Shown piece after piece: positions 3,900 through 58,296 of a DNA stretch of 64,000 nucleotides (within the stretch, counting starts at the first letter, position 1; each line of letters starts with the position of its first letter). The translations under genes were made by a program, and so were the position numbers. This DNA comes from Octopus sinensis. Its lineage: Eukaryota. The stretch spans positions 62,001 through 126,000 of the forward strand of contig NW_021836000.1 of assembly GCF_006345805.1 (NCBI RefSeq). The letters run 5' to 3'. The notes under the pieces are model-generated. The model was not told the origin of the DNA. It made no database searches and worked only from the letters and a program-made list of their open reading frames with translations.

Positions 3900-4286
3900 T
3901 ATAAAATGATGGATAAGTTAGAAAATTTAGCGCAAAATAATCTTTTGAGACACTCTAAAAATATTATGAGTTTAGATTTCAACTTGGAAAAGATTTAAAA
4001 AATAAGAAAATTTGAAATTGACTGATTATTTTAAAAAATGTTTTAAAAAGAATGATTTATTAATTAATCAAAATAGAATAAAAAAACAGAATAGAAATCT
4101 ATCAAACTATAAAGCAAAAAAGCACAACTTATTGTCTTATCTCCATATAAACACTTTGGAAGATGTGAAAGAGTTCTTTCTTCGAAAAATAAACCAAAAT
4201 TTAAATTAAATGAACTATAATTCAATAGTTTGAATCAGACCTCCGCTTTCTGGGACACTTTGGTGCCCCATCTCAGGGTTAGACTG
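3900..4286 (+). mobile_element. Right end of a pogo-like element
   Basis: Ends ...GGTGCCCCATCTCAGGGTTAGACTG|TA, the inverse of the left end CAGTCTAACCCCGGGGTGGGGCACC at 49237. Paralog ends at 18965. Confidence 0.75.
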
Positions 4287-5202
4287 TAATAATTTTGAGA
4301 AATCCTTCCAACAAATTAGATCGTTTTTTCGATTTGTCTGACCCAATAAAATTCTCGAATAATCTAAATTCTGGTTAAACTATTGTCAGGAAAAAGAAAA
4401 ATTAAATTTGAAATGGCTACGGAATGCAAAGTTCGAATTAAAATGATATAAACCTCACTTTTGTTCTGATTTTTAACGCAATTTCTTCGATGATTTGTTC
4501 TTATCACGAATAGGTAATTTTCAATATTATGGAAATTGATTATTGACAAACAAATACAGTTTTAGTTAAAAAAAATTCGTGCTCTTCAAGAGCTTTCATT
4601 TCTTCACACTCTTTACGATGTATACTGAGCTTTTCAATATACTGCTGTTTTTGATTAAATCTCTATAAATACCCTGTGTGAGGCAATTAAATCTGAAGTA
4701 AAACTCTGTATGGAAATCAGGCATTCTAATTTTCTTTCGTTTTTACCGACATCACCAATGGTGTCCCATATATATCAATTGAGAGAAGACGGACTCTTTG
4801 TTAAATCCGCTCAATACACGTGGTTACAATTGACATTAACAAGAATTCGCAAAGAAAATGTTTTATGGGCACATGGTGTATTGGACCTGATGGAGATATC
4901 ATAAACCAGAGTCAACTCCATCTTCATACAGCATAAATGGCATATATATCAATGACAAATATGAACTCTTTATTCCGAATCTAGATGACACTGTAGAAGC
5001 CTACGATCTAGTAGTAAATCTAACACAAAATGAAAAGAGTATAGAGGAGGTTTTGAACAAGATATTTCATCAACTGAAGAAGAAAAAATGATAGTCAAAG
5101 AAAGAGATGGATAACCAAGTCTGAACAAACTGGGCTGGATGGAGTGATACAAAACCAATAACTCAATTGAAAAAAATAAAACTACCAAAATGACAAATCC
5201 AA

Positions 5203-5476
5203 TATCTATTTTACTGATTGGAATGTAAAAACATTTCACAAAACAAAATTAAATCAGGAAATAAACAATTAATGCATATTACAATATTGATAAGACAAAC
5301 ACAGAACTAACAATTGTAAACAATCGAAAGATTGGAATCAAAATCCGGTATCTATTTTACTGATTGGAATGTAAAAACATTTCACAAAACAAAATTAAAT
5401 TAGGAAATAAACAATTAATGCATATTACAATATTGATAAGACAAACTCAGAACTAACAATTATAAACAATCGAAAG
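5203..5476. repeat. Tandem duplication of a ~146-bp AT-rich unit (2 copies)
   Basis: TATCTATTTTACTGATTGGAATGTAAAAAC... recurs at 5203 and 5349. The same pair is at ~19883-20157 and a single unit at ~38686. Confidence 0.8.
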
Positions 5477-7019
5477 TCCTGCGCAAATATTAATATGCAT
5501 TCATTTGAAATAACATGAATAATAATATGAATTAATATTTACAAAATGTGAAAAGTAAAAAATGTGCCACGTTATAATAAATAGTAAAATATTATGTAAA
5601 ATTTTATTATATTTATTCGAATTATTAAAAAAATTTAATAACAAAAATAAATAATTTTTTAAAAGTTTAATAGCATAGGAAGAATATTTTACCAAATTCG
5701 CCAAAAAAATTTTTCCCTGAAACAATGCATTGTTCACACTGATGGTCTGATTAGGCACTTGTGTGCACGTTTTTTCGATATTTTGACAGGCAAATGTATA
5801 AGCGGGAAACTATTCGGTATGAAAAACAGTGATATATAAATTTAATCATGTTTTTTTACATTCTGAGATCAACTTAAAACTCTACAAACTGACAGAACTA
5901 AACATACTTAAGCACGCAATCTTTTTTTTGGAAAACGCAAATAAATCACAAGCAATGTTGATTTCCAATTCTGAAATTGTTTATGAAACAAACAGGCTGT
6001 GAACAATATAAAAAGTCTGCTTTAACTTACTCCCCTTCCCATCGAATTAAAAACAGAAATGACTTATGCAAAATGCCAGGTCTACATTTAATTCTCTATC
6101 CAGCTAGTAAGCTGTCGCTTTGTTTGACAGACTAGAAAGAAATGACAGAACTGCTCGGGTTATTTTCATTTCCTGGGACTACTCATCAATAAACCAACGT
6201 TGATTTATTAGAAAATATACATCTGACGGATGTCTGAGTGAGGACTCTCTCGAGGTAGATTATCCTCATGCGGGAGGAGTTGGTCCTCACTCAACAATTA
6301 AGGAATGAGACAAGTTGTGTCATTCGTGGAATCTCATTTCTGTAGTGATCGAATACTTTTTGAGCATATACTTCCCACAAAATGTAACCACTGTCACTTT
6401 GGGTGTCTTTGAACGTGAAGACTTTCCCTATACTGAAGACATGTCTTCATTCTTACCAGCAGGAAAGAGTGAGTTGGCTGAGGTTTTTCCACAAATATGG
6501 ACTATGTGGAATACTGGCCGACGATATGGGAAGACACTCCAAGTACTAGTCTCCCTCCATAGCCACTACAAGTCCAATTTATTGGTAAGAAATCTTTCTC
6601 GACATTTTGTCAGGACTGTATTGTACCTTAGAAATCAGGATGTCAGGTCTAACCTCAGGATGTGTTCCATCAGAAGGCTGATTGAATAAAAATCTATCTC
6701 AAGGTCTTTTTGCAATAATCAATGTTATAGGTGCAAATTTGTACAAATCTGATTTACATGAATGGATTATAAAATTTGCAGTCAATGATTACTAAATCAA
6801 ACTGAAACGAAATAACAAGTGCACTCAAAATGTACGCACTGAATGAAAATTCCGTTCATCCCCTTGTAAAAAGATCATAAATAGCCCTGCCACAAGACGT
6901 AAATGACATGTTGACATCTCGCTCAGGCCGGCCACACTTTTTTGTAAAGATTTCGGAATACTACCAACCCTTCAAGCACTACACGACCCCTTGTTGCCCT
7001 GTGTTCGTATTAAACTAGC

Positions 7020-7832
7020 CAGGTTTGTTAAATTTAAATCATTTGATTTAATCAACAATAAAAATCAATGATTTAAATCATTAAAAAAATCAAAAAAATC
7101 AAAAAAATCATTTAAATTTTTTTAAATGTCTGGAAGAAAGCGTGATTCTTTGTGGGCTTATTTGATAAACGTATTATTCCTGGAAAGACCGGAAGCCGTG
7201 CCAGATGTCGTAATTGTGGGAAGGACATACAAGGTCTTGTATCTCGGATGAGGCAGCATCATTTATTATGTCGAAGTAATATTGATATCCCTGAAAATAT
7301 GCCGAGACCTGAAAGCGAATTTCCTCCAAGGATGAAGGACCATTCATTAATCAATTTCGTAACTACGACGACTTCATCTAAGAAAGATTTGATGGATCTG
7401 CAACTCGCTAGATACATATTTTCTACAAACACTCCGTTTGCTGCTGTAGAACATCCCGAATTTGTCAAATTCGTCCAAATGCTTCTTCCTGGGTATCGTT
7501 TACCCTCTCGTCATCAAATTGGTGGTACATTACTTGATCATGTGTACGACCAAATACATGAAGACTGTCGACAAAGACTCCAGGACAAAACAGTGTCTAT
7601 GATGTTGGACGGGTGGAGCAACATTCATAATGAACCCGTTATTTGTGTCTCGGTTGTGACATCAGATGGGGAAAATTATCTCATTGACACTGTGGACACT
7701 TCTGGATATAGCCACACTGCGGAATATCTTCAATCTGTTGCTTTAGCCTCCGCACAATTGGCTGAACAACGGTTTGGATGTAAAATCGGCAGTCTTGTAA
7801 CGGATAATGCTGCCAACATGACTAAAATTTAG
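7020..7832 (+). mobile_element. 3'-truncated hAT element (BED finger + start of RNase H domain)
   Basis: Left end CAGGTTTG with repeated GATTTAAATCA motifs. ORF has W..CRNC..H..C (BED) and LDGWSN, and stops at TDNAANMTKI. A 1-bp deletion near the start relative to the 21813 copy breaks the frame. Confidence 0.85.
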
Positions 7833-8091
7833 TTTAACTAGCTAATTTTTATTTAAACCATCAATTCACTAGTTTAACAATCGTTAATATGCCATGAAAT
7901 ACGTACAAAACTATTCTGTTCTATAATCTGAAAAAATCTTTGGGAAAATAATGGTATAGAAATATAAGTAACAATTTAATCAGAAATTAATAATTATCAC
8001 AATGTATCAGGTCGCATAAACATTATTTCGAATTGAAATAATGCGTGATTACCTGAAATTATATTTTTGCTGAAAATACGATCAAATAATA

Positions 8092-8196
8092 TGTCACATG
8101 GGTGATCAGACCCCTATGGGCAACCTGGCCTTTACGTGTTTCCATGGCAACTACATAGCAAATATTTACTAAAAGGCCAACTAATATAAAGGCAAA
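8092..8196. mobile_element. Terminal fragment of the TGT...ACA (Ginger-like) non-autonomous element
   Basis: TAATA|TGTCACATGGGTGATCAGACCCCTATGGGC..., matching 22778 and 40865; interrupted at 8197 by the CRE-like element. Confidence 0.85.
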
Positions 8197-8279
8197 TACC
8201 CAGGCTTGTATTTGGGATTAAATATATTATATATACAGTCAAATTAATTAATAGAGAATTAATGTCGTGAACTTGAGGG

Positions 8280-11264
8280 TTAGTCCGACGACGAAGCACT
8301 GCGGATAGAGAGGCAGTTCCCGCGAAGAATTGCAACCGAGATGCGCTGGAAAAGCCAGCTCGTCTCCCTCCGGTCATTTGTATTCTGTGAGATTCTTCCT
8401 CCCACAACCCGTAACAGATTTTCTACCTTCTTTCCAACCACACCGGAGGTCTCAAAGGCTAGGGGGACAAACTCAACGACGTTCGGAAGCACAGCGTACT
8501 TCGTCAACTTCCTTTCTTCTGCCAGCGCACATGCGTAGCCTGGTGTACTGGCTGTTCCTGTGAGCACAGTATCTGAAAAGGAGTCGACGCAAGTTACATC
8601 CCAAACAAGAGACCTTCCTCCTCTAAAGGGGAATATAGTCATCCCGTCAGGACGCTTTCCGTCACTGCGGCAGAGCCCAATAGGTTCAAGGGTCGATGGG
8701 AATCCCGCAGAATCCAAAGCCCTTTTCACCACTTCATTGAGGAGGACGTGGCGGGGAAATCGGCCAGCACTCCTCCTACAGGACAATGCGTGTAAACCGT
8801 TCGAAGGAATCAAAAAACCACAGCGACAACGGTGAGGTTGGCAGATTTCAAGTCCAAGTCGAAGACACACTCCGATACGTATAGTTTCGTCTTCCATAAG
8901 CAGACCATTGGACGCCAACGGAAGTGCGTTTAGCCAGTCTCCTGAGTGAGGCTGACAGGCACAGTTCAAAGAAGCCAGTTCCAACTGGTCGACTCGCGTG
9001 CGAAGACTCTCCAACAGGTGTGTGCACCAGATGACATCCCAACTCTTCTGTATTGAAGGAATCTCCGGAAGGCCAAGTCCGAGCGATCTCCAGGCGAGAA
9101 CAGCAACAGGGTATTCCGTAAGCTCATCAAGTTCGAGTGAGTTGATAAGAACAGAGCGAACGAAATTGCCGGAAGCAGACATCGACGAGAGATAACAAGG
9201 CAAAGCAAGATCTGCACAAGAACGAACCCCAAGGCCACCAAAGCGGAGTGGAAGTGCGGCACGTGTACGTCCCACGTCAGTGAACAAAGTGTTCAGTAGT
9301 AACTGTAATGATGATGTAACCGCGTCATCCAAATCCAAAAGTTCTTGACGTGAGCGAAAACAAGGAGACGTTCGGAGCAAAAAGGTTAAACGGGGGATAA
9401 AAAGAAAGTTTTTCAGCAAAAACAGCCCCAGATGGGAGCCAAACAGTCGTAATCGGTCGCAGAGAGGAGCAATCTTATCTCGTTGTGAAACGATAGCCTT
9501 CGCAATTCCCTTATCAGAAATCGGTGAACCCAGAATCACAAGATCCGCGAGAGCGGTTATACGAAGGCCGTCAATTTTCTCCGAAAGGGCCATAAAAACC
9601 TCACTCTGTTGGGTTAGCGGCTCCGTAAGTCCGATTAGTTCACATTTTGCACCATTTAGAGAAAGGCCAATCTTCAAAAATTCAGATATTATCTTCGAGG
9701 CGTCGTCCATAATGACTTCTAAAGGCCCACCAAGAGTGACGTCATCCAAATACCAAAAATTGATAGGCGAAGAAATGCCACGTGCAACGTGATCAACACA
9801 GACAGCGAATAGTAGAGGACCGAGGGGGTCGCCCTGTTGGATTCCACACTCAGAGTTGATAACTTTTCCGGAAAAAAGTAAGCTGCTCGGCAAGGAATAG
9901 GCCAAGGATACAATTGGGAGAAGATCAGGGCAACGTTCACCAACAGCCTCAAGCATGTGGTCTCTTCTGACACTATTAAAAGCATTCTTGACATCGAGCT
10001 TAAGCAAGAAGGGTACATTCTTCGGTTTCGAAATAGTCACCTGGCGAGAGGCGTGAGCTAGTGCTTCACAGGCCCCTTTAACACCAACGCCGAACTGGAA
10101 TGGCAAGAATTCCCGACACAATTGCGGAATAACACGACGTGACATTATTTTGGCAGCAAGGCGTCTGAAGACATTACCAACTGCAATTGGCCGTAAACCG
10201 CCATCACTCTTACGGAGAGCTGTTAGATTGGCCGAAAATAGGAGATCCCTCGCAACAGCAGGGATGGCGCCCGTGACAATTCGAGAGCAAAGCCGATTGA
10301 TCGAATCCAGGAGAGCACGGCCCGAGTCGGCAGTCAAAGGAGATATAAGGTCCCTCAGATGTATGGGCTTTATTCCGTCAATGCCTCCACTGCTGCTGAG
10401 CGGGAAGGACGACAAAGCAGCTGAGACCTCGGAGTTAGTCGTATGGGGGACATCGGCCGAGCACGGATTGGACGTTAATCGAAGATTTTCAGGGGCACTA
10501 GGATGCTTGTGGCACAATTCCAAGTACACGGCCTCTGAAGGAGGCGCCACGGGCGTGTTTGAAGAGATCACCCGGACTGCCCCACTGACGTCCCCTTGCA
10601 TAAGTTTACTTTTAACTGCCCGTATCATGAAAGAACAATCCGTGTCGTGCGTAGAGGCACAGGACTCCACGTTCTGGGGTTTGGAAGATAAGAGGCCAAC
10701 AGACAGCCAGTCCGGGTCAAAATCTGAATGAACAAAACAGGAACAAGCGTCTTTAATCCGCTGGGCTGGTGATACCTGTCGGCCATCCCGCAATCGAACG
10801 GTACGAGACCCCAAGCATAAGGGAGCAAAGCAGAAGAGTTTAAACCAAGCTTCATGAGAATCGGACGACAGTGCCTGATCGATGATAGTAGAAAGGGCCT
10901 TCGCGGCCGATAGTCTCGCTGACTTAGGGATTCTCGCCAGCACAGGTGATGAAATCCGAAAGGTAGAAAGGAGGCATAAGAAAATCTCGCTATCCAGGCA
11001 GTGGGAAGTAGCTTTCATAACAGAAGCGGGGCGGATTAGGTTGTATGGATTAAGAGAAGGCACAAGACATCCAGAACACTTCCAATTAGATAATAACAGA
11101 GAGCGGGCTTTGGAGAGTCCCACGCAGGAAAGGTGGAAGAAAAGGCCACAAGAAACACAAGTACGTCCCTTCTTGCGAGAATTCAATACATTGCAACCAG
11201 AGCATAAAGAAACGATATTACCATTGTTGGGCTCCTTCTTCAACGCAACTTTTTCTATCTTCAT
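8280..11264 (-). CDS. Non-LTR retrotransposon polyprotein, PHD finger-RT-restriction-like endonuclease (CRE-like lineage 1), 994 aa
   Basis: PHD C4HC3 (CSGC..CVSC..HLSC..WKCSGC). RT motifs GLRPIAVG, KLDVKNAFN, GIQQGDPLGPLLF, WYLDD. CRCG..HALSC knuckle, RH, KRPDG, WDVTC, EERKLTKY. Probable start MKIEK at 11264; the 39 upstream codons translate a T-rich leader. Confidence 0.93.
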   Translation of the reverse strand: MKIEKVALKKEPNNGNIVSLCSGCNVLNSRKKGRTCVSCGLFFHLSCVGLSKARSLLLSNWKCSGCLVPSLNPYNLIRPASVMKATSHCLDSEIFLCLLSTFRISSPVLARIPKSARLSAAKALSTIIDQALSSDSHEAWFKLFCFAPLCLGSRTVRLRDGRQVSPAQRIKDACSCFVHSDFDPDWLSVGLLSSKPQNVESCASTHDTDCSFMIRAVKSKLMQGDVSGAVRVISSNTPVAPPSEAVYLELCHKHPSAPENLRLTSNPCSADVPHTTNSEVSAALSSFPLSSSGGIDGIKPIHLRDLISPLTADSGRALLDSINRLCSRIVTGAIPAVARDLLFSANLTALRKSDGGLRPIAVGNVFRRLAAKIMSRRVIPQLCREFLPFQFGVGVKGACEALAHASRQVTISKPKNVPFLLKLDVKNAFNSVRRDHMLEAVGERCPDLLPIVSLAYSLPSSLLFSGKVINSECGIQQGDPLGPLLFAVCVDHVARGISSPINFWYLDDVTLGGPLEVIMDDASKIISEFLKIGLSLNGAKCELIGLTEPLTQQSEVFMALSEKIDGLRITALADLVILGSPISDKGIAKAIVSQRDKIAPLCDRLRLFGSHLGLFLLKNFLFIPRLTFLLRTSPCFRSRQELLDLDDAVTSSLQLLLNTLFTDVGRTRAALPLRFGGLGVRSCADLALPCYLSSMSASGNFVRSVLINSLELDELTEYPVAVLAWRSLGLGLPEIPSIQKSWDVIWCTHLLESLRTRVDQLELASLNCACQPHSGDWLNALPLASNGLLMEDETIRIGVCLRLGLEICQPHRCRCGFLIPSNGLHALSCRRSAGRFPRHVLLNEVVKRALDSAGFPSTLEPIGLCRSDGKRPDGMTIFPFRGGRSLVWDVTCVDSFSDTVLTGTASTPGYACALAEERKLTKYAVLPNVVEFVPLAFETSGVVGKKVENLLRVVGGRISQNTNDRRETSWLFQRISVAILRGNCLSIRSASSSD

Positions 11265-11340
11265 ATTGAAAATTAACAAAAAAAACAATAAACAGAGAAA
11301 AAATAAGATAATAAAAAACCAAAAGATATATAACAAACAA

Positions 11341-12186
11341 TTAAAATGAAAAAAATTTTGGATATTGACATCTAAAATCAATTAACCACAATTTAATACT
11401 TCTATGAAATAGATAAAAAGGGGTTTTCTTCATGGAAGAATGCAAGCTTTTATTATAATTGTACACTACCAAGTCCAAACATGAAATCCATTCTTTATTT
11501 TGATGTATGAAAAGTTTTTTTTGTAACCAACGAGTTAACGTTTGGTTACAACGTTCTACTTGGCCCTGCGACTGAGGATGCCTTGGACGACAAAACTTTT
11601 GTAAAATGTTAAATTCTGTGCATAAAGAATTTACTAGTTCATTTTTGAACTCTTTCCCATTGTCAGATTGTAAAATCTGAGGAGGTCCAAAACAATAAAA
11701 GATAGTTCTTAAAGCTGAACAAATAGCAGTTGCTTTTTTTGAGACGATAGCTTTTGCAAAACAAAATTTGGAATATACGTCAATGATATTAAATATATAT
11801 TTAAAGCCATCATTGGCTTGGAACCATCGACTTAAATCCACCAAGTCCATTTGAAATCTTTCTCGTGGAAACTTTGCTTTAATGTGAATCATAGGAATTT
11901 GAGCTTTTAAAGGTTGGCTTTGTGCACATGCTGTGCATTCGGAACATACTTCACGTATAACGGACCTTTTGATAGTGAAATAATAATTGTCGCAAAATTC
12001 TTTGAGTTTATTAATCCCATAATGGGTGGTCAAATGATGTTTCATGCATTCCATCTTCATAGTTAGAATGTCGTTCTGTGCAATAACTCGTTTGTGAGCC
12101 TCGTCATTAGTAAAAAATATTGAATCTTCTAACAAGAAAAGATTGGGCTTCTTGATAAATAAAATAGTGAAAAATTGTGAATGCAA
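11341..12186 (-). CDS. Ginger-like transposase/integrase (HHCC + DDE core), intronless, probably C-terminally truncated
   Basis: HHLTTHYG..CTAC zinc motif; FQMDLVD, QSDNGKEF and QGQVERCN catalytic motifs. No gag, RT or LTR adjacent. Confidence 0.85.
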   Translation of the reverse strand: MHSQFFTILFIKKPNLFLLEDSIFFTNDEAHKRVIAQNDILTMKMECMKHHLTTHYGINKLKEFCDNYYFTIKRSVIREVCSECTACAQSQPLKAQIPMIHIKAKFPRERFQMDLVDLSRWFQANDGFKYIFNIIDVYSKFCFAKAIVSKKATAICSALRTIFYCFGPPQILQSDNGKEFKNELVNSLCTEFNILQKFCRPRHPQSQGQVERCNQTLTRWLQKKLFIHQNKEWISCLDLVVYNYNKSLHSSMKKTPFYLFHRSIKLWLIDFRCQYPKFFSF

Positions 12187-12399
12187 AAAAGATGTGTTGA
12201 TATCACAAATTAAAATAACCCCGAGTTAACAATTCTTTTTGTTTTGTAAATATCTTATCATGTTGCGTTAACTTTTTTTAATAAAAATTACAAAATAAGG
12301 CAACTCCCTGATTTGTACGGTTAAATAAACTACAAAATGAGGTTAAACTTCTGATATGTTAATAGAGCTTAATAGATAGAATTACGGATAAGATATTAA

Positions 12400-12660
12400 G
12401 GTTAGGAAATGGTTAGGAATAGGGTGATTTGGATTAGAAAATGGTTAGGGTTAAGGTTAGGGTGTGGTTGGGTTAGAATCAAGATAGGGGTAAGGTTAGG
12501 GTTAGGGTTTGGTTGAATTAGGATCAAGGTAGGGTTAAGGTTTGGTTGGATTAAGATCAAGATAGGGTTAAGGTTGGCGTTAGAGTAGGCATTAAGGTTA
12601 GAGTTTGGATTAATAAATGGTTAGGGTTCGGATATGGTTTAAGTTTTTGTTGGAATAGAG
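12400..12660 (+). repeat. Degenerate TTAGGG-like hexamer array (interstitial)
   Basis: Six-base periodicity (GGTTAG, GGTTAA, GGTTTG, GGATTA...) with several exact TTAGGG units. Confidence 0.85.
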
Positions 12661-12912
12661 TCAAAGTATAAGTTTTTAAGAATAATTTCTATTTTTATAA
12701 TATTAATTTTTCTTTTTATAAGTTTATATAAAATAATAAATTATATTTTCATTTTTGAACAATTACTATGTGGTGTTCAAAATTGAGATTTCAATTTTTA
12801 TGAAGCCTGTCACCTGTCAACGTCAACTGTCATGTCTCAGGGTCAAAGTGTAACGCTTAAAATTGGTGTAACCCGCATGGAGCGCCACATTCACTATCAT
12901 TTTTCACGTAAC

Positions 12913-15900
12913 TTGAAACACGTGTACACGTTGTTGTTGTTGTGGTGTAATTTTTTTTTTTCAATTTATCTGTTATTTTTCATATCTTTTGTATAATTTA
13001 ATACATTCCTTTTCCTTTTTCTTTCGCTTTATTGCATCATTCTTTACATGGCAACTTGTTCCTCTTGTAAATCATCCAATTCCCGCAAGAAGGGCCGCTT
13101 GTGCTCCTCTTGCGATCTGTACTTCCATCTATCCTGCGTCGGGCTCTCCAGGGCCAGCTCGGCCGTTATCCTATGCTGGAAGTGCCCGAGTTGCCTTGGT
13201 CTACCCAAACGCATATCCCCAATTCCCGGGAGCCATTTTACCCCTTCTCAATTCCTCAAATCCTTATCTGCTTTCCGAAGCGAATCATTCATCCCAGTAA
13301 GGATTCCAAAATCGGCCAGACCCACTGTGGCCAAGTCCCTCGCAGCCTTGATCGACCAGGCGCTGGCTTCCAGCGCTCCTGACCCTTGGTTCAAGCTGTT
13401 CTCTTTCTTTCCCGTTTGCCTCAATTCTTCTCCCATGCGCTCATGCGCTGCTAATCACGTTTCTTCTGCCCAGCGGATTAAGGACCGTTGTACATCTTAC
13501 GTCCACTCAGAGTTCAACTCTGATTGGCTGTCTGTCTCTCTTACGCCCCCTTGTAAGGAGGCACCCTCAAAACGGCCCGGTCTCGCAGAATTGCGCTTTT
13601 CCCGGGCAGTCCGAAGCAAACTCCTCCAGGGCGATATCTCTGGTGCAGTGCGCGCAATTTCATCCAACTCCTCTGTGGCTCCTCGGTGTGATGCTGTCCT
13701 GAATCAACTCCGCAGCAAACACCCCCAAGCTCCCACCGACCTCCGTGCAACACCGACGTTAGTTTCGGCTCCGTCCAACCCGATAACCTCGTCTGAGGTT
13801 TCGGCCGCTCTCGGGTCTTTTGCGCCCAGTAGCAGCGGCGGGATAGACGGTGTAAAGCCCATCCACCTACGCGATCTCCTGAGCCCATTGACCCACGAAT
13901 CCGGAAAAGACCTGCTATCTTCTGTCACTCGTCTTTGTTCGCACATTGTCTCGGGCGAGATTCCAACCGTCGCCAGAGATCTTCTTTTCTCTGCTGGCCT
14001 CATTGCCCTGTCGAAAGCCGATGGCGGCGTGAGGCCCATTGCGGTCGGTAACGTTTTCAGGAGACTCTCGGCCAAGATAATGTCCCGCAGGGTGGTTCCC
14101 CCCCTGAGTCTGGAGTTTCTCCCTTTCCAGTACGGTGTCGGCGTCCAAGGTGCCTGCGAAATTCTCGCGCACGGCACTCGCCAACTTGTCCAGTCAAAGC
14201 CAGAAGACTGCAAGTTCATCGTGAAGCTGGACGTCAGCAACGCATTCAACTGCGTCCGCCGGGACCATCTGCTCGAAGTGGTCTCGGCACGTTGCCCCGT
14301 TCTCTTCCCAATTGTAAAGCTGGCATACTCTGCCCCAAGCTGCCTTCTGATCCATGATCAGATCATCATGTCAGAATGCGGCATTCAGCAGGGTGACCCA
14401 CTGGGCCCATTGCTGTTTGCCCTCTCCGTTGACCACATTGCACGGAACCTTTCTTCCACTGTTAACTTCTGGTACCTGGACGACGTGACGATCGGTGGAC
14501 CTACAGAGGTCGTTATGGAAGACGTTAAGAGAATCACTTCCGGTTTCTCCAAGATCGGACTATCTCTTAACGGCGAAAAATGCGAACTCGTAAACATTTC
14601 TCTTGCCCCCGCCGCTCTCCGCAACACATTCTCCTCTCTCAGCAGCCTGATCGTTGGGTTAAGGCTAACGCCCACCAGCGATCTAGTTATCTTGGGCTCT
14701 CCAATTTCCGCTGAAGGCATAGAAAATGCCTTATCGTCTAAATGGGACGAAATTAAACTACTCACTGATCGGATCCGTGGGCTTGGCTCGCATCTTGCGT
14801 TTTTCTTGTTGAAGAACTTTCTTTTCGTCCCCAGACTGACCTATATTCTCCGTTCCTCCCCGTGTTTCGCTGCCACAGAGTCATTATCCAGAATCGATAA
14901 TCTTGTCCACCAATCGCTAACATTCCACCTCAATTTGAGGTTCACTGGTGACGGTTTTACCCGTGCCAGTTTACCAACTCGCTTCGGGGGGATCGGGATC
15001 CGCTCTTGTGCGGACCTGGCCCTACCCTGCTATCTCTCATCCATGTCGGCTTTCAGGAATTCCGTTTGCTCAGTTCTACTTCCCTCTCTCGAACTTAATG
15101 AGCTCTCGGAATTCTCATCTGCATGCCGTACGTGGTGCTCACTCGACCTTGATTTTCCCACGATCCCTTCAGTTCAAAGGGGCTGGGACGAAATTCTCTG
15201 CTCGAACACATTACGAAAACTTCGCTCCAAGTCGGACCAACTCCAGCTGGCCACCCTTAACTGCGCCTGTCAGCCGCACACGGGTGACTGGCTCAAAGCT
15301 CTCCCCACTCCTAGTACGGGGTTACTACTGGACGACGAATCCTTGCGGATTGGGATCAGCTTACGATTGGGTTTGGACATCTGCCAGCCCCACCCTTGCC
15401 GGTGCGGGTCCTCAATTTCGTCAAACGGCTTGCACGCCTTGTCGTGTAAGAAGAGTGCCGGGAGAATTCCCCGTCACACTCATCTGAATGACGTTGTGAG
15501 GAGGGCTCTAGAGTCGGCTGGTTTCCCTTCCACCCTAGAGCCAGTCGGCCTTTCCCGGAGCGACGGCAAGCGTCCCGACGGGATGACGACCTTTCCTTTT
15601 AGGGAAGGCAAGTCCCTGGTTTGGGATGCCACGTGTGTCGACTCTTTTTCGGCGACAATGCTTCCCAGGACTGTCGCAAACCCGGGTTCCGCCAGTGCGC
15701 TGGCTGAAGAGACAAAGATGACGAAATACCGGTGTATTTCGGACGCTTTTGAGTTTGCCCCCCTCGCCTTCGAAACCTCTGGAATCGTCGGAAAGGCTGC
15801 GACTCAACTCCTCACCGCCATTGGTAGAAAAATCTCCACAAAAACAAACGACCGGAGGGAGACGAGCTGGCTGTTCCAGCGAATCTCGGTTGCTGTGCTC

Positions 15901-15995
15901 CGCGGAAACTGCCACTCAATACGCAGCGCGGCATCGTTGAGCTGACCCTCAGGCCCTCGACAATTCCCTTAGCCACCCAATTGCTTACTTTTTTC
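12913..15995 (+). mobile_element. Full-length CRE-like retrotransposon (lineage 2) with 13-bp TSD
   Basis: Direct repeat TTTTTCACGTAAC at 12900-12912 and 15996-16008 brackets a T-rich leader, the ORF and a ~50-nt 3' UTR; no poly(A). Confidence 0.85.
13048..15945 (+). CDS. PHD finger-RT-restriction-like endonuclease polyprotein (CRE-like lineage 2), 965 aa
   Basis: CSSC..CSSC..HLSC..WKCPSC PHD; GVRPIAVG, KLDVSNAFN, GIQQGDPLGPLLF, WYLDD; CRCG..HALSC, RH, KRPDG, WDATC, EETKMTKY, FETSG. Uninterrupted ORF. Confidence 0.95.
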   Translation: MATCSSCKSSNSRKKGRLCSSCDLYFHLSCVGLSRASSAVILCWKCPSCLGLPKRISPIPGSHFTPSQFLKSLSAFRSESFIPVRIPKSARPTVAKSLAALIDQALASSAPDPWFKLFSFFPVCLNSSPMRSCAANHVSSAQRIKDRCTSYVHSEFNSDWLSVSLTPPCKEAPSKRPGLAELRFSRAVRSKLLQGDISGAVRAISSNSSVAPRCDAVLNQLRSKHPQAPTDLRATPTLVSAPSNPITSSEVSAALGSFAPSSSGGIDGVKPIHLRDLLSPLTHESGKDLLSSVTRLCSHIVSGEIPTVARDLLFSAGLIALSKADGGVRPIAVGNVFRRLSAKIMSRRVVPPLSLEFLPFQYGVGVQGACEILAHGTRQLVQSKPEDCKFIVKLDVSNAFNCVRRDHLLEVVSARCPVLFPIVKLAYSAPSCLLIHDQIIMSECGIQQGDPLGPLLFALSVDHIARNLSSTVNFWYLDDVTIGGPTEVVMEDVKRITSGFSKIGLSLNGEKCELVNISLAPAALRNTFSSLSSLIVGLRLTPTSDLVILGSPISAEGIENALSSKWDEIKLLTDRIRGLGSHLAFFLLKNFLFVPRLTYILRSSPCFAATESLSRIDNLVHQSLTFHLNLRFTGDGFTRASLPTRFGGIGIRSCADLALPCYLSSMSAFRNSVCSVLLPSLELNELSEFSSACRTWCSLDLDFPTIPSVQRGWDEILCSNTLRKLRSKSDQLQLATLNCACQPHTGDWLKALPTPSTGLLLDDESLRIGISLRLGLDICQPHPCRCGSSISSNGLHALSCKKSAGRIPRHTHLNDVVRRALESAGFPSTLEPVGLSRSDGKRPDGMTTFPFREGKSLVWDATCVDSFSATMLPRTVANPGSASALAEETKMTKYRCISDAFEFAPLAFETSGIVGKAATQLLTAIGRKISTKTNDRRETSWLFQRISVAVLRGNCHSIRSAASLS

Positions 15996-16229
15996 TTTTT
16001 CACGTAACCTAAGGATTGAGACTATACTGATACAACATCTTTTGGAAGATACCATCTTTTAATTAAAATGACGCTTATAATAAATTATTTTCTTTGTTTA
16101 TTTAATGTCAAACTATGTAGGTCACGCTGTCAACAATGAAGGTCGCTCTGGTCGCCTGTGTGAGGCGGGCATATTAAACCAAATTCAAGATTTTGAGGAT
16201 TTGCCTTATGTGTGCATATCGATTCTAAG

Positions 16230-18139: not shown

Positions 18140-18965
18140 GTATCTTGATTTTAATAATAATTCCAAGATTTCTATTGAAACAAACAAATATTAAAATTGC
18201 AAAGTGTCTACAAACTTCTTCTGAAAGAGAAGTTGCAAAAAAATTCAAGATAAGCAAAGACACTATTTCCCAAATAAAAAAACATTTCTTCTTTCATTAA
18301 TACCGGATCAGTCATTTCAAGGTTAGTTCAAATAGATGAAGTTGAACAAGTTTCTAATGAAATAAATCAATTTGACTATCAAAGATTAACGACGACTTTC
18401 TCCTGGAAGCAAATTGAGGAAAATAGAGAAGAATTAGTTGAAGATAAAAATTGCTGGGAAGAAGTCCTGGAAGAAATATAACTGAAGTAATATCTGAAGA
18501 AAACAAAGATCTATTCAAAAGTCGCTAATTTTATAATGGAATTGGCACAGAGGAAAAAACAACGATATTGGAAACGTATAAAATGATGGATAAGTTAGAA
18601 AATTTAGCGCAAAATAATCTTTTGAGACACTCTAAAAATATTATGAGTTTAGATTTCAACTTGGAAAAGATTTAAAAAATAAGAAAAATTTGAAATTGAC
18701 TGATTATTTTAAAAAAATGTTTTAAAAAGAATGATTTATTAATTAATCAAAATCAAATAAAAAAACAGAATAGAAATCTATCAAACTATAAAGCAAAAAA
18801 GCACAACTTATTGTCTTATCTCCATATAAACACTTTGGAAGATGTAAAAGAGTTCATTCTTGGCAAAATAAACCAAATTTTAAATTAAATGAACTATAAT
18901 TCAATAGTTTGAATCAGATCCCCGCTTTCTGGGACACTTTGGTGCCTCATCTCAGGGTTAGACTG
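18140..18965 (+). mobile_element. Internally deleted pogo-like element
   Basis: HTH-like KIAKCLQTSSEREVAKKFKISKDTISQIK; right TIR ...CAGGGTTAGACTG|TA. Confidence 0.65.
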
Positions 18966-21900
18966 TAATAATTTTGAGAAATCCTTCCAACAAATTAGAT
19001 CGTTTTTTCGATTTGTCTGACCCAATAAAATTCTCGAATAATCTAAATTCTTGGTTAAACTATTGTCAGGAAAAAGAAAAATTAAATTTACAAGCGCTAT
19101 GGAATGCAAAGTTCGCATTAAAATGATATAAACCTCACTTTTGGTCTTATTTTTTACGCAATTTCTTAAATGATTTGTTCTTATCACGAATAGGTAATTT
19201 TCAATATTATGGAAATTGATTATTGACAAACAAATACAGTTTTAGTTAAAAAAAATTCGTGCTCTTCAAGAGCTTTCATTTCTTCACACTCTTTACGATG
19301 TATACTGAGCTTTTCAATATACTGCTGTTTTTGATTAAATCTCTATAAATACCCTGTGTGAGGCAATTAAATCTGAAGTAAAACTCTGTATGGAAATCAG
19401 GCATTCTAATTTTCTTTCGTTTTTACCGACATCACCAATGGTGTCCCATATATATCAATTGAGAGAAGACGGACTCTTTGTTAAATCCGCTCAATACACG
19501 TGGTTACAATTGACATTAACAAGAATTCGCAAAGAAAATGTTTTATGGGCACATGGTGTATTGGACCTGATGGAGATATCATAAACCAGAGTCAACTCCA
19601 TCTTCATACAGCATAAATGGCATATATATCAATGACAAATATGAACTCTTTATTCCGAATCTAGATGACACTGTAGAAGCCTACGATCTAGTAGTAAATC
19701 TAACACAAAATGAAAAGAGTATAGAGGAGGTTTTGAACAAGATATTTCATCAACTGAAGAAGAAAAAATGATAGTCAAAGAAAGAGATGGATAACCAAGT
19801 CTGAACAAACTGGGCTGGATGGAGTGATACAAAACCAATAACTCAATTGAAAAAAATAAAACTACCAAAATGACAAATCCAATATCTATTTTACTGATTG
19901 GAATGTAAAAACATTTCACAAAACAAAATTAAATCAGGAAATAAACAATTAATGCATATTACAATATTGATAAGACAAACACAGAACTAACAATTGTAAA
20001 CAATCGAAAGATTGGAATCAAAATCCGGTATCTATTTTACTGATTGGAATGTAAAAACATTTCACAAAACAAAATTAAATTAGGAAATAAACAATTAATG
20101 CATATTACAATATTGATAAGACAAACTCAGAACTAACAATTATAAACAATCGAAAGTCCTGCGCAAATATTAATATGCATTCATTTGAAATAACATGAAT
20201 AATAATATGAATTAATATTTACAAAATGTGAAAAGTAAAAAAATGTGCCACGTTATAATAAATAGTAAAATATTATGTAAAATTTTATTATATTTATTCG
20301 AATTATTTAAAAAATTTAATAACAAAAATAAATAATTTTTTAAAAGTTTAATAGCATAGGAAGAATATTTTACCAAATTCGCCAAAAAAATTTTTCCCTG
20401 AAACAATGCATTGTTCACACTGATGGTCTGATTAGGCACTTGTGTGCACGTTTTTTCGATATTTTGACAGGCAAATGTATAAGCGGGAAACTATTCGGTA
20501 TGAAAAACAGTGATATATAAATTTAATCATGTTTTTTTACATTCTGAGATCAACTTAAAACTCTACAAACTGACAGAACTAAACATACTTAAGCACGCAA
20601 ATCTTTTTTTTGGAAAACGCAAATAAATCACAAGCAATGTTGATTTCCAATTCTGAAATTGTTTATGAAACAAACAGGCTGTGAACAAATATAAAAAGTC
20701 TGCTTTAACTTACTCCCCTTCCCATCGAATTAAAAACAGAAATGACTTATGCAAAATGCCAGGTCTACATTTAATTCTCTATCCAGCTAGTAAGCTGTCG
20801 CTTTGTTTGACAGACTAGAAAGAAATGACAGAACTGCTCGGGTTATTTTCATTTCCTGGGACTACTCATCAATAAACCAACGTTGATTTATTAGAAAATA
20901 TACATCTGACGGATGTCTGAGTGAGGACTCTCTCGAGGTAGATTATCCTCATGCGGGAGGAGTTGGTCCTCACTCAACAATTTAAGGAATGAGACAAGTT
21001 GTGTCATTCGTGGAATCTCATTTCTGTAGTGATCGAATACTTTTTGAGCATATACTTCCCACAAAATGTAACCACTGTCACTTTGGGTGTCTTTGAACGT
21101 GAAGACTTTCCCTATACTGAAGACATGTCTTCATTCTTACCAGCAGGAAAGAGTGAGTTGGCTGAGGTTTTTCCACAAATATGGACTATGTGGAATACTG
21201 GCCGACGATATGGGAAGACACTCCAAGTACTAGTCTCCCTCCATAGCCACTACAAGTCCAATTTTATTGGTAAGAAATCTTTCTCGACATTTTGTCAGGA
21301 CTGTATTGTACCTTAGAAATCAGGATGTCAGGTCTAACCTCAGGATGTGTTCCATCAGAAGGCTGATTGAATAAAAATCTATCTCAAGGTCTTTTTGCAA
21401 TAATCAATGTTATAGGTGCAAATTTGTACAAATCTGATTTACATGAATGGATTATAAAATTTGCAGTCAATGATTACTAAATCAAACTGAAACGAAATAA
21501 CAAGTGCACTCAAAATGTACGCACTGAATGAAAATTCCGTTCATCCCCTTGTAAAAAGATCATAAATAGCCCTGCCACAAGACGTAAATGACATGTTGAC
21601 ATCTCGCTCAGGCCGGCCACACTTTTTTGTAAAGATTTCGGAATACTACCAACCCTTCAAGCACTACACGACCCCTTGTTGCCCTGTGTTCGTATTAAAC
21701 TAGCCAGGTTTGTTAAATTTAAATCATTTGATTTTAATCAACAATAAAAATCAATGATTTAAATCATTAAAAAAAATCAAAAAAATCAAAAAAATCATTT
21801 AAATTTTTTTAAATGTCTGGAAGAAAGCGTGATTCTTTGTGGGCTTATTTTGATAAACGTATTATTCCTGGAAAGACCGGAAGCCGTGCCAGATGTCGTA

Positions 21901-24319
21901 ATTGTGGGAAGGACATACAAGGTCTTGTATCTCGGATGAGGCAGCATCATTTATTATGTCGAAGTAATATTGATATCCCTGAAAATATGCCGAGACCTGA
22001 AAGCGAATTTCCTCCAAGGATGAAGGACCATTCATTAATCAATTTCGTAACTACGACGACTTCATCTAAGAAAGATTTGATGGATCTGCAACTCGCTAGA
22101 TACATATTTTCTACAAACACTCCGTTTGCTGCTGTAGAACATCCCGAATTTGTCAAATTCGTCCAAATGCTTCTTCCTGGGTATCGTTTACCCTCTCGTC
22201 ATCAAATTGGTGGTACATTACTTGATCATGTGTACGACCAAATACATGAAGACTGTCGACAAAGACTCCAGGACAAAACAGTGTCTATGATGTTGGACGG
22301 GTGGAGCAACATTCATAATGAACCCGTTATTTGTGTCTCGGTTGTGACATCAGATGGGGAAAATTATCTCATTGACACTGTGGACACTTCTGGATATAGC
22401 CACACTGCGGAATATCTTCAATCTGTTGCTTTAGCCTCCGCACAATTGGCTGAACAACGGTTTGGATGTAAAATCGGCAGTCTTGTAACGGATAATGCTG
22501 CCAACATGACTAAAATTTAGTTTAACTAGCTAATTTTTTTAAACCATCAATTCACTAGTTTAACAATCGTTAATATGCCATGAAATACGTACAAAACTAT
22601 TCTGTTCTATAATCTGAAAAAATCTTTGGGAAAATAATGGTATAGAAATATAAGTAACAATTTAATCAGAAATTAATAATTATCACAATGTATCAGGTCG
22701 CATAAACATTATTTCGAATTGAAATAATGCGTGATTACCTGAAATTATATTTTTGCTGAAAATACGATCAAATAATATGTCACATGGGTGATCAGACCCC
22801 TATGGGCAACCTGGCCTTTACGTGTTTCCATGGCAACTACATAGCAAATATTTACTAAAAGGCCAACTAATATAAAGGCAAATACCCAGGCTTGTATTTG
22901 GGATTAAATATATTATATATACAGTCAAATTAATTAATAGAGAATTAATGTCGTGAACTTGAGGGTTAGTCCGACGACGAAGCACTGCGGATAGAGAGGC
23001 AGTTCCCGCGAAGAATTGCAACCGAGATGCGCTGGAAAAGCCAGCTCGTCTCCCTCCGGTCATTTGTATTCTGTGAGATTCTTCCTCCCACAACCCGTAA
23101 CAGATTTTCTACCTTCTTTCCAACCACACCGGAGGTCTCAAAGGCTAGGGGGACAAACTCAACGACGTTCGGAAGCACAGCGTACTTCGTCAACTTCCTT
23201 TCTTCTGCCAGCGCACATGCGTAGCCTGGTGTACTGGCTGTTCCTGTGAGCACAGTATCTGAAAAGGAGTCGACGCAAGTTACATCCCAAACAAGAGACC
23301 TTCCTCCTCTAAAGGGGAATATAGTCATCCCGTCAGGACGCTTTCCGTCACTGCGGCAGAGCCCAATAGGTTCAAGGGTCGATGGGAATCCCGCAGAATC
23401 CAAAGCCCTTTTCACCACTTCATTGAGGAGGACGTGGCGGGGAAATCGGCCAGCACTCCTCCTACAGGACAATGCGTGTAAACCGTTCGAAGGAATCAAA
23501 AAACCACAGCGACAACGGTGAGGTTGGCAGATTTCAAGTCCAAGTCGAAGACACACTCCGATACGTATAGTTTCGTCTTCCATAAGCAGACCATTGGACG
23601 CCAACGGAAGTGCGTTTAGCCAGTCTCCTGAGTGAGGCTGACAGGCACAGTTCAAAGAAGCCAGTTCCAACTGGTCGACTCGCGTGCGAAGACTCTCCAA
23701 CAGGTGTGTGCACCAGATGACATCCCAACTCTTCTGTATTGAAGGAATCTCCGGAAGGCCAAGTCCGAGCGATCTCCAGGCGAGAACAGCAACAGGGTAT
23801 TCCGTAAGCTCATCAAGTTCGAGTGAGTTGATAAGAACAGAGCGAACGAAATTGCCGGAAGCAGACATCGACGAGAGATAACAAGGCAAAGCAAGATCTG
23901 CACAAGAACGAACCCCAAGGCCACCAAAGCGGAGTGGAAGTGCGGCACGTGTACGTCCCACGTCAGTGAACAAAGTGTTCAGTAGTAACTGTAATGATGA
24001 TGTAACCGCGTCATCCAAATCCAAAAGTTCTTGACGTGAGCGAAAACAAGGAGACGTTCGGAGCAAAAAGGTTAAACGGGGAATAAAAAGAAAGTTTTTC
24101 AGCAAAAACAGCCCCAGATGGGAGCCAAACAGTCGTAATCGGTCGCAGAGAGGAGCAATCTTATCTCGTTGTGAAACGATAGCCTTCGCAATTCCCTTAT
24201 CAGAAATCGGTGAACCCAGAATCACAAGATCCGCGAGAGCGGTTATACGAAGGCCGTCAATTTTCTCCGAAAGGGCCATAAAAACCTCACTCTGTTGGGT
24301 TAGCGGCTCCGTAAGTCCG

Positions 24320-24320
<1 letters not shown>
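18577..24320 (+). repeat. ~5.7-kb segmental duplication of 3900-9634
   Basis: Colinear and near-identical from ~19170, with mostly homopolymer-length differences; more diverged in the first ~600 bp. Confidence 0.95.
21705..22520 (+). mobile_element. 3'-truncated hAT element, BED-finger ORF 21813-22520
   Basis: Same as 7020-7832 but the ORF is open from MSGRKRDSLW (235 aa). Confidence 0.85.
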
Positions 24321-57402: not shown

Positions 57403-57470
57403 ACCATTTTCAAGTCAATTTGACAATTACAAACTTCAAATGTCATCTGGATAATTCAATTTGTCAATTA

Positions 57471-58296
57471 CACGGGTGACTGGCTCAAAGCTCTCCCCAC
57501 TCCTAGTACGGGGTTACTACTGGACGACGAATCCTTGCGGATTGGGATCAGCTTACGATTGGGTTTGGACATCTGCCAGCCCCACCCTTGCCGGTGCGGG
57601 TCCTCAATTTCGTCAAACGGCTTGCACGCCTTGTCGTGTAAGAAGAGTGCCGGGAGAATTCCCCGTCACACTCATCTGAATGACGTTGTGAGGAGGGCTC
57701 TAGAGTCGGCTGGTTTCCCTTCCACCCTAGAGCCAGTCGGCCTTTCCCGGAGCGACGGCAAGCGTCCCGACGGGATGACGACCTTTCCTTTTAGGGAAGG
57801 CAAGTCCCTGGTTTGGGATGCCACGTGTGTCGACTCTTTTTCGGCGACATTGCTTCCCAGGACTGTCGCAAACCCGGGTGCCGCCAGTGCGCTGGCTGAA
57901 GAGACAAAGAGGACGAAATACCGGTGTATTTCGGACGCTTTTGAGTTTGCCCCCCTCGCCTTCGAAACCTCTGGAATTGTCGGAAAGGCTGCGACTCAAC
58001 TCCTCACCGCCATTGGTAGAAAAATCTCCACAAAAACAAACGACCGGAGGGAGACGAGCTGGCTGTTCCAGCGAATCTCGGTTGCTGTGCTCCGCGGAAA
58101 CTGCCACTCAATACGCAGCGCGGCATCGTTGAGCTGACCCCCAGGCTCTCGACAATTCCCTTAGCCACCCAATTGCTTTAAATTCTTTGTTGTATTTTTT
58201 AGCGAAATCTAAATTTAATAAAATGTACAGGAAACACCAAAAAATGCTTTCTTTATTTAAAGTGATTCAGTTTAATTCAAAATTCACGAATTTTGC
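57471..58296 (+). mobile_element. 5'-truncated lineage-2 CRE-like copy with extra 3' sequence, 12-bp TSD
   Basis: Near-identical to ~15279-15986 then ~118 unrelated nt; ATTTGTCAATTA at 57459-57470 and 58297-58308. Confidence 0.88.

Follow-up and report, generated by a model that had tools for sequence, protein, structure and literature searches.

We analysed a 64,000-nucleotide stretch of the Octopus sinensis genome (NCBI RefSeq assembly GCF_006345805.1, contig NW_021836000.1, positions 62,001 to 126,000; hereafter the window, in whose own coordinates features are given), which holds a related pair of retrotransposons without long terminal repeats (LTRs), the non-LTR elements A and B, arranged head to head with one intact copy per family. 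Element B lies on the + strand as a full-length copy of 3083 bp (12913..15995), made up of a 5′ untranslated region (UTR) of 135 nt (12913-13047), a single open reading frame (ORF) listed at 965 amino acids (13048-15945) and a 3′ UTR of 50 nt (15946-15995). Its boundaries are fixed by a perfect 13-bp target-site duplication (TSD), the left copy of which, TTTTTCACGTAAC (12900..12912), was read from the sequence and also recovered by a TSD script; the same script recovered the right copy (15996..16008). Element A lies on the − strand as a near-full or full-length copy (8233..11306), with 8233 its last shared 3′ base and a true 5′ end between 11306 and 11396. ORF A is listed at 8280-11381 (−) from a TTG codon; reading from the ATG at 11264 gives a protein of 994 amino acids (8280-11264), and this start aligns with that of ORF B.

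Aligned by BLASTP over their full lengths, the proteins share 62% identity across 975 columns with 12 gaps. A reading made earlier from the sequence alone had proposed that the window contains two intact, alignable ORFs that each join a PHD finger to a reverse transcriptase (RT) and a restriction-like endonuclease (RLE), and the coordinates, the alignment, Pfam and a motif scan all agree with it: in each ORF, regular expressions picked out a C4HC3 finger, a YLDD box and a CCHC/RH/E/PD/D/K string. ORF B carries its PHD finger at residues 4-49 (13057..13194, +), its RT core at residues 323-516 (14014..14595, +; Pfam RVT_1, with YLDD at 14473-14484), and its CCHC zinc knuckle and RLE at residues 784-894 (15397..15729, +). 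The corresponding features of ORF A, all on the − strand, are the finger at residues 21-66 (11067..11204), the RT core at residues 351-544 (9633..10214; YLDD at 9741-9752), and the CCHC and RLE at residues 813-923 (8496..8828). Each protein runs from a PHD-fold zinc finger through an N-terminal extension, the RT and a CCHC knuckle to an R2-homologous PD-(D/E)xK endonuclease.

Domain content and relatives

Elements A and B are established as RLE-bearing non-LTR retrotransposons. Pfam RVT_1 matches the two ORFs at E 1.5e-17 and 2.1e-16, and D478 and D479 of the YLDD box are invariant in 72 homologues. Sequence matches of the RT to proteins in the PDB are weak, comprising R2 (9e-7, 31 bits), a retron RT (3e-6), a group II intron RT (9e-6) and L1 ORF2p (4e-4); because the similarity to R2 is no better than that to the retron and group II intron enzymes, the RT is no close relative of R2. 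At the C-terminus, a profile matches R2Bm residues 932-996 (E 0.0035) with every motif in register, and the CCHC and endonuclease residues of ORF B, C784, C786, H796, C800, R809-H810, E831, P843-D844, D860 and K890, are all invariant in 72 homologues. An AlphaFold2 model of the last 231 residues (pLDDT 94.6) gave seven Foldseek matches at E <= 1e-3, every one an R2 protein (R2Bm, R2Tg and R2Pm; E 4e-7 to 4e-5, probability 1.00), followed by PD-(D/E)xK nucleases of the cap-snatching, Holliday-junction and restriction types. In both ORFs a Pfam scan at E <= 1 returned solely PHD families and RVT_1, with no apurinic/apyrimidinic endonuclease (APE).

The N-terminal domain is, on its predicted structure, a genuine PHD fold. 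PF00628 is matched end to end (1-47/47) in both ORFs at 19.2 and 17.5 bits, against a gathering score of 24, and the PHD model scores 30.6 bits in a clade member, P0013. The C4HC3 spacing is given as C-x2-C-x11-C-x2-C-x4-H-x2-C-x13-C-x2-C, and C4, C7, C19, C22, H27, C30, W44, C46 and C49 are invariant in 18 sequences, W44 being the conserved Trp that precedes the seventh ligand by two residues. This pattern is kept in the 18 homologues despite finger identities of 29-55%, which, together with the invariance of the endonuclease residues in 72 homologues, excludes chance. A profile built from the 18 N-termini matched 104 PHD fingers in the PDB, with BPTF best (5.4e-10) and Alfin-like 3 at 1e-9. 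An AlphaFold2 model of residues 1-55 (pLDDT 90.6) superposes on the PHD finger of Alfin-like 1 with a TM score of 0.83 and a root-mean-square deviation of 1.1 Å, and all 50 listed Foldseek matches of the model are PHD fingers. Between A and B the nonsynonymous divergence (dN) amounts to 0.33 for the finger and 0.19 for the RLE, but reaches 1.05 for the linker just after the finger; the synonymous divergence (dS) is saturated over most of the ORF, and whole-ORF dN/dS is therefore of no use. Judged by these dN values, the PHD finger is under constraint.

A word-based protein search identified 213 relatives at E <= 1e-5. The best named one is O. sinensis LOC115231754 (64% identity), and further relatives belong to a barnacle, a tardigrade, a nematomorph and moths. 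Contigs of 3-5 kb from ENA, JGI and Logan make up the majority; at least two of these contigs derive from ENA metagenome assemblies, one of them TARA Oceans. Among 72 near-full-length relatives, the N-terminus is a C4HC3 PHD finger in 20, a CxxC..HGP..CxGS motif in 28, a Cys-rich CXC-like motif in 4 and a C2H2 finger in 4, the others being N-terminally truncated. When the shared core (from residue 85 onwards) was placed on a maximum-likelihood tree, one group (SH-aLRT 100) brought together 19 PHD bearers with 5 N-truncated models, the two window ORFs being sisters within it, and the HGP and CXC types fell in the other large group. Every complete member of the PHD clade begins with a PHD finger, and other zinc fingers fill the same slot in sister clades, bearing out the proposal that the PHD finger stands at the N-terminal position that other zinc fingers take in related elements: homologues carry C2H2, HGP or CXC-like motifs there. 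In the ESM Atlas, PHD together with RVT_1 occurs in clusters of 201 and 97 members, and the conserved clade and these large clusters together indicate that the PHD-RT-RLE architecture is old, conserved and common in sequence data.

Two further features were observed among the relatives. The finger of the largest sister clade (P0047-P0087 and others) reads CxxC-x12-14-H-x-HGP-x5-C-x-GS and matches no Pfam family at E <= 1. The PHD clade member P0010, encoded on the TARA Oceans contig (L078:348-4874), combines PHD, RT and RLE with a C-terminal ubiquitin carboxyl-terminal hydrolase (UCH) domain (E 8e-59), recalling the cysteine protease that NeSL elements carry of their own.

Copy structure, target sites and expression

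Both families are young and multi-copy. Searching the 2.72-Gb assembly with each element and its flanks gave 44 and 48 scored matches for the two elements on many contigs, nearly all 97-100% identical and sharing a common 3′ end with differing 5′ truncation. For family B, a first look returned 460 candidates for the last 391 bp and 41 for the first 391 bp of the ORF, about 14 of the 41 at >=98% identity. Eight other full-length B copies show 98.5-99.8% identity; two of them keep the 965-residue ORF, and several full-length copies are broken by stops. NCBI names the O. sinensis relatives 'uncharacterized protein LOC...', as would fit domesticated host genes or gene-model artefacts in place of active transposons; we give this explanation almost no chance, and it is refuted by hundreds of near-identical 5′-truncated copies on many contigs, with poly(A), TSDs and, in some full-length copies, stops. 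Further PHD-coding 5′ regions with 71-79% DNA identity to family B (G000 C8845:181345, C8460:17554, C8901:479725 and C9339:20823) were also observed, indicating that several more diverged lineages of the same architecture are present in the genome.

We compared both junctions of 60 copies with mismatched flank pairs. TSDs of at least 8 bp were present in 16/60 copies, against 5.6% of mismatched controls, and TSDs of at least 10 bp in 9/60, against 0.8%; the duplications are 8-14 bp long. At the 3′ side many copies have a variable AT-rich stretch of 10-30 nt and then a run of 10-37 A residues, and full-length B copies open with variable (GTT)n-like runs at their 5′ ends, with at least two 5′UTR variants. 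In most cases the first base of the duplicated target site is A or T, as expected if the poly(A) tail serves in priming. The copies lack LTRs and terminal inverted repeats, and they bear the hallmarks of target-primed reverse transcription from polyadenylated RNA: heavy 5′ truncation, the AT-rich spacer and poly(A), the 8-14 bp TSDs and occasional inversions resembling twin priming.

Individual copies carry additional marks. The 3′ spacers of A and B copies (L014-L064) are alike only in their first bases (TAAAG, TAAAT or GTAC) and then diverge, with element bodies 98-100% identical; variable polyadenylation sites or an imprecise start of reverse transcription may account for this. Three family B copies (L037, L030 and L027, on C7755, C7757 and C8697) have the 5′ part inverted relative to the 3′ part, with breakpoints almost adjacent (1724/1728), slightly apart (2221/2275) or overlapping (2429/2304), and look like products of twin priming in an RLE-type long interspersed nuclear element (LINE). 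An unrelated repeat with a palindromic GGGAGGCGCGCCTCCC core at its end adjoins broken B copies at three different internal positions (L029, L030 and L036), suggesting a DNA transposon inserted into B copies.

Insertion takes place at many unrelated AT-rich sites rather than at one DNA target. The flanks of about 60 copies on dozens of contigs are unrelated and AT-rich, and contain no fixed target motif beyond AT-richness. The sequence-only reading had named insertion at a fixed DNA target as a point that would count against its proposal of chromatin-guided insertion, and no such target appeared in these flanks. The same dispersal sets the elements apart from CRE-type site-specific insertion into spliced-leader genes or telomeric repeats, and it also departs from the R2 clade, whose C2H2 and Myb motifs found no match in the Pfam scan. 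As a separate observation, three independent insertions from families A and B (L003, L055 and window 57430-57470) lie in one 41-bp satellite with unit start GACAAATTGAATTATCCAGATGAC, two of them at overlapping monomer positions in opposite orientation.

At least family B is transcribed. We searched four oligo-dT or poly(A) RNA-seq runs under the same species label, and in run X12 the reads are spread uniformly over B (12861 to 16012), the depth per bin inside the ORF being roughly 5 to 16-fold, with zero reads in the 600 bp upstream and almost none in the 190 bp downstream. Unaligned 5′ ends of these reads match the other 5′UTR variant. Even coverage, set against a 10-30-fold genomic excess of 3′ ends, speaks for RNA from full-length copies rather than DNA carry-over.

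Possible roles of the finger and the surrounding repeats

The sequence-only reading had suggested a histone-reading module that replaces DNA recognition. In that account the finger reads the state of the histone H3 tail, tethers the ribonucleoprotein to chromatin and biases insertion, for example towards chromatin rich in transposable elements (TEs). The dispersed, non-sequence-specific insertions agree with it, as do the several insertions in satellites or other TEs, although in a repeat-rich genome without a matched control these are uninformative on chromatin guidance. The best fold and profile matches of the finger likewise point this way, being readers of H3 di- or trimethylated at lysine 4 (H3K4me2/3): Alfin-like 1 and 3, BPTF, PHF8, PHF2, Pygo and TAF3. 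The same reading had noted F or Y in place of Trp two residues before the PHD His, and this holds, with Y in B and F in A; in BPTF the position is that of the cage residue W32.

The details of the binding surface argue otherwise. In a hidden Markov model (HMM) alignment, the positions of BPTF Y17 and Y23 are S/N and G, and the W32 position varies across the clade between F, Y, H, Q, S, N and W; the octopus fingers are aromatic at a single BPTF-type cage position, and the residue there is not Trp. Where acidic residues would grip the H3 N-terminus, the fingers instead carry a basic loop of almost constant sequence, N-x-R-K-K/R, and in 18/18 fingers the net charge over about 55 residues lies between +3 and +8, where the aligned BPTF and Alfin segments are acidic by simple count. 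The finger therefore lacks the complete aromatic cage, with its Trp two before the His, and the acidic peptide surface of the H3K4me3-reading PHD subclass (BPTF, ING, Alfin and TAF3 type). A predicted complex of the ORF B finger with octopus H3 residues 2-41 scored 0.00, which weighs neither way. From these residues, methyl-histone reading by the finger appears unlikely, the proposed histone reader and its steering of insertion to TE-rich chromatin are left unsupported, and chromatin tethering as a whole seems to us quite improbable. The basic loop, the positive net charge and the incomplete aromatic cage instead favour nucleic-acid contact, or a combined import-and-anchoring role, over methyl-histone reading.

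The basic loop is also open to a simpler explanation, in which the finger serves chiefly for structure or for import into the nucleus, the R-K-K/R loop is a nuclear localization signal (NLS) and target choice is unaffected. R13 and K14, in the loop between the first two Cys pairs, are the only nearly invariant non-ligand residues besides Trp44, and the insertion sites show AT-richness at most, both as this would predict; yet a bare NLS needs no 46-residue zinc-binding fold conserved at 29-55% identity, and the presence of different zinc fingers at the same place in sister clades suggests a common binding function. We regard a purely structural or import role as possible, though unlikely.

We put at about 0.8 the probability of the reading in which the window carries a single intact member from each of two related families of autonomous, single-ORF non-LTR retrotransposons of about 3.1 kb, with the PHD finger as an anchoring module that probably contacts nucleic acid. 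In this scheme the finger would serve the family as its N-terminal anchor, in the role that zinc-finger and Myb motifs have in R2, and may contact nucleic acid or join nuclear import with DNA contact. Several observations weigh against it. The nearest structural neighbours of the finger are all H3K4me2/3 readers, and the key cage position is still aromatic in the octopus copies, which leaves some room for a chromatin role. No clear TSD was found by the simple test in 44/60 copies. Family B RNA is present in one of the four runs (X12, 237 reads), and all of these reads show about 40 fixed differences from the window copy, so that expression is shown for family B and not for the window copy. The tree comes from a quick search and is midpoint-rooted. 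No TSD was detected for copy A, its two flanks share no common word of at least 7 nt, and its 5′ junction is a mosaic. A more far-reaching form of the chromatin model, which we consider a distinctly improbable proposition, would make the PHD finger a true chromatin reader, of a modified or unmodified histone tail or of another nucleosome surface, that supplanted the sequence-specific fingers in a site-specific ancestor of the RLE type, giving rise to a dispersed, chromatin-guided LINE widespread in marine invertebrates.

Several repeats surround the two elements in the window. The 5′ side of element A adjoins a truncated LTR-retrotransposon integrase (rve E 1.1e-17, zf-H2C2), a fragment at 11397-12186 (−) with its break at 11397, whose intact relatives elsewhere run on into different sequence. 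No pre-insertion allele of A or B was found, as related loci of the upstream repeats stop short of the elements' downstream flanks. A 5.7-kb segmental duplication (3900-9634 = 18577-24320, 99.4% identical) includes a partial element A copy comprising the 3′ 1.4 kb (22919..24320, −), which is therefore not an independent insertion. The duplication also carries a hAT-like ORF (7152-7832; DUF659 E 1e-8, weak zf-BED), and its second copy (18577-24320) is followed on the + strand by about 29 A residues after the breakpoint within A. A 5′-truncated family B copy of 709 bp (57470..58178, +) lies inside the 41-bp satellite.

Comparison with known elements

R2 and other RLE-type LINEs attract study, and now also engineering, as machines for site-specific insertion in which N-terminal fingers pick the target. 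A large natural clade with a PHD finger in that slot, three other finger types in its sister clades and dispersed insertion offers a finger series that is a ready-made means to ask how the N-terminal module sets target choice. The octopus elements are intact, recently mobile and transcribed at the family level in a cephalopod, a group in which only an RTE element had been argued to be active before (PMC9115989). A full-text literature search, with Repbase and Dfam outside its scope, found no description of a PHD-RT-RLE element; as the domain order is abundant in public data, the value of the elements lies in description and experiment, not in rarity.

The octopus elements resemble R2 (R2Bm, R2Tg and R2Pm; 8gh6, 8ibw, 9dou and 9nl2) in their single ORF, N-terminal zinc module, RT, CCHC knuckle and C-terminal PD-(D/E)xK endonuclease. 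R2 inserts specifically into 28S rDNA and employs C2H2 and Myb motifs (PMC7650587). By contrast, the octopus elements have a PHD finger in the N-terminal slot, insert at dispersed sites and show weak RT similarity to R2.

Classical members of the CRE clade have C2H2 fingers and insert into spliced-leader genes or telomeres, whereas many different sites and a PHD finger characterise the octopus elements. The two nevertheless share an RLE motif grammar, which in the CRE clade (SLACS, CZAR, CRE1 and CRE2, and the fungal MoTeR, Cnl1 and FoTeR) reads C..C..H..C / RH(D/N) / E / (R/K)PD / D/E (PMC12857005). For the CRE-like placement that the sequence-only reading put forward as possible, the sole pointer is the name 'Retrotransposable element SLACS protein' given by its submitters to the barnacle homologue, at 41% identity. 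R4/Dong elements are likewise an RLE-type LINE lineage with some non-site-specific members, and 'Dong', an RLE LINE, is one of two full-length LINEs in the Octopus bimaculoides repeat library (PMC9115989). No PHD finger is mentioned in that paper. BLAG elements are RLE-type LINEs that have lost site specificity and whose N-terminal zinc fingers have varied through recombination, but what they carry is one to three R2-type Cys-His fingers, not a PHD finger.

Recruitment of PHD as a TE accessory domain has parallels in CR1/L2 LINEs, Chlamys Penelope-like elements (PLEs) and Rehavkus transposons. For CR1/L2-type LINEs, PMC8557442 credits a PHD domain in ORF1 to Kapitonov and Jurka (2003). The settings differ: in Chlamys PLEs the finger lies within the RT or the GIY-YIG endonuclease, in Rehavkus it is part of a DNA transposon, and in CR1/L2 elements the PHD finger sits in the separate ORF1 of APE-type LINEs, whereas the octopus elements have it as an N-terminal fusion to the RT-RLE polyprotein itself.

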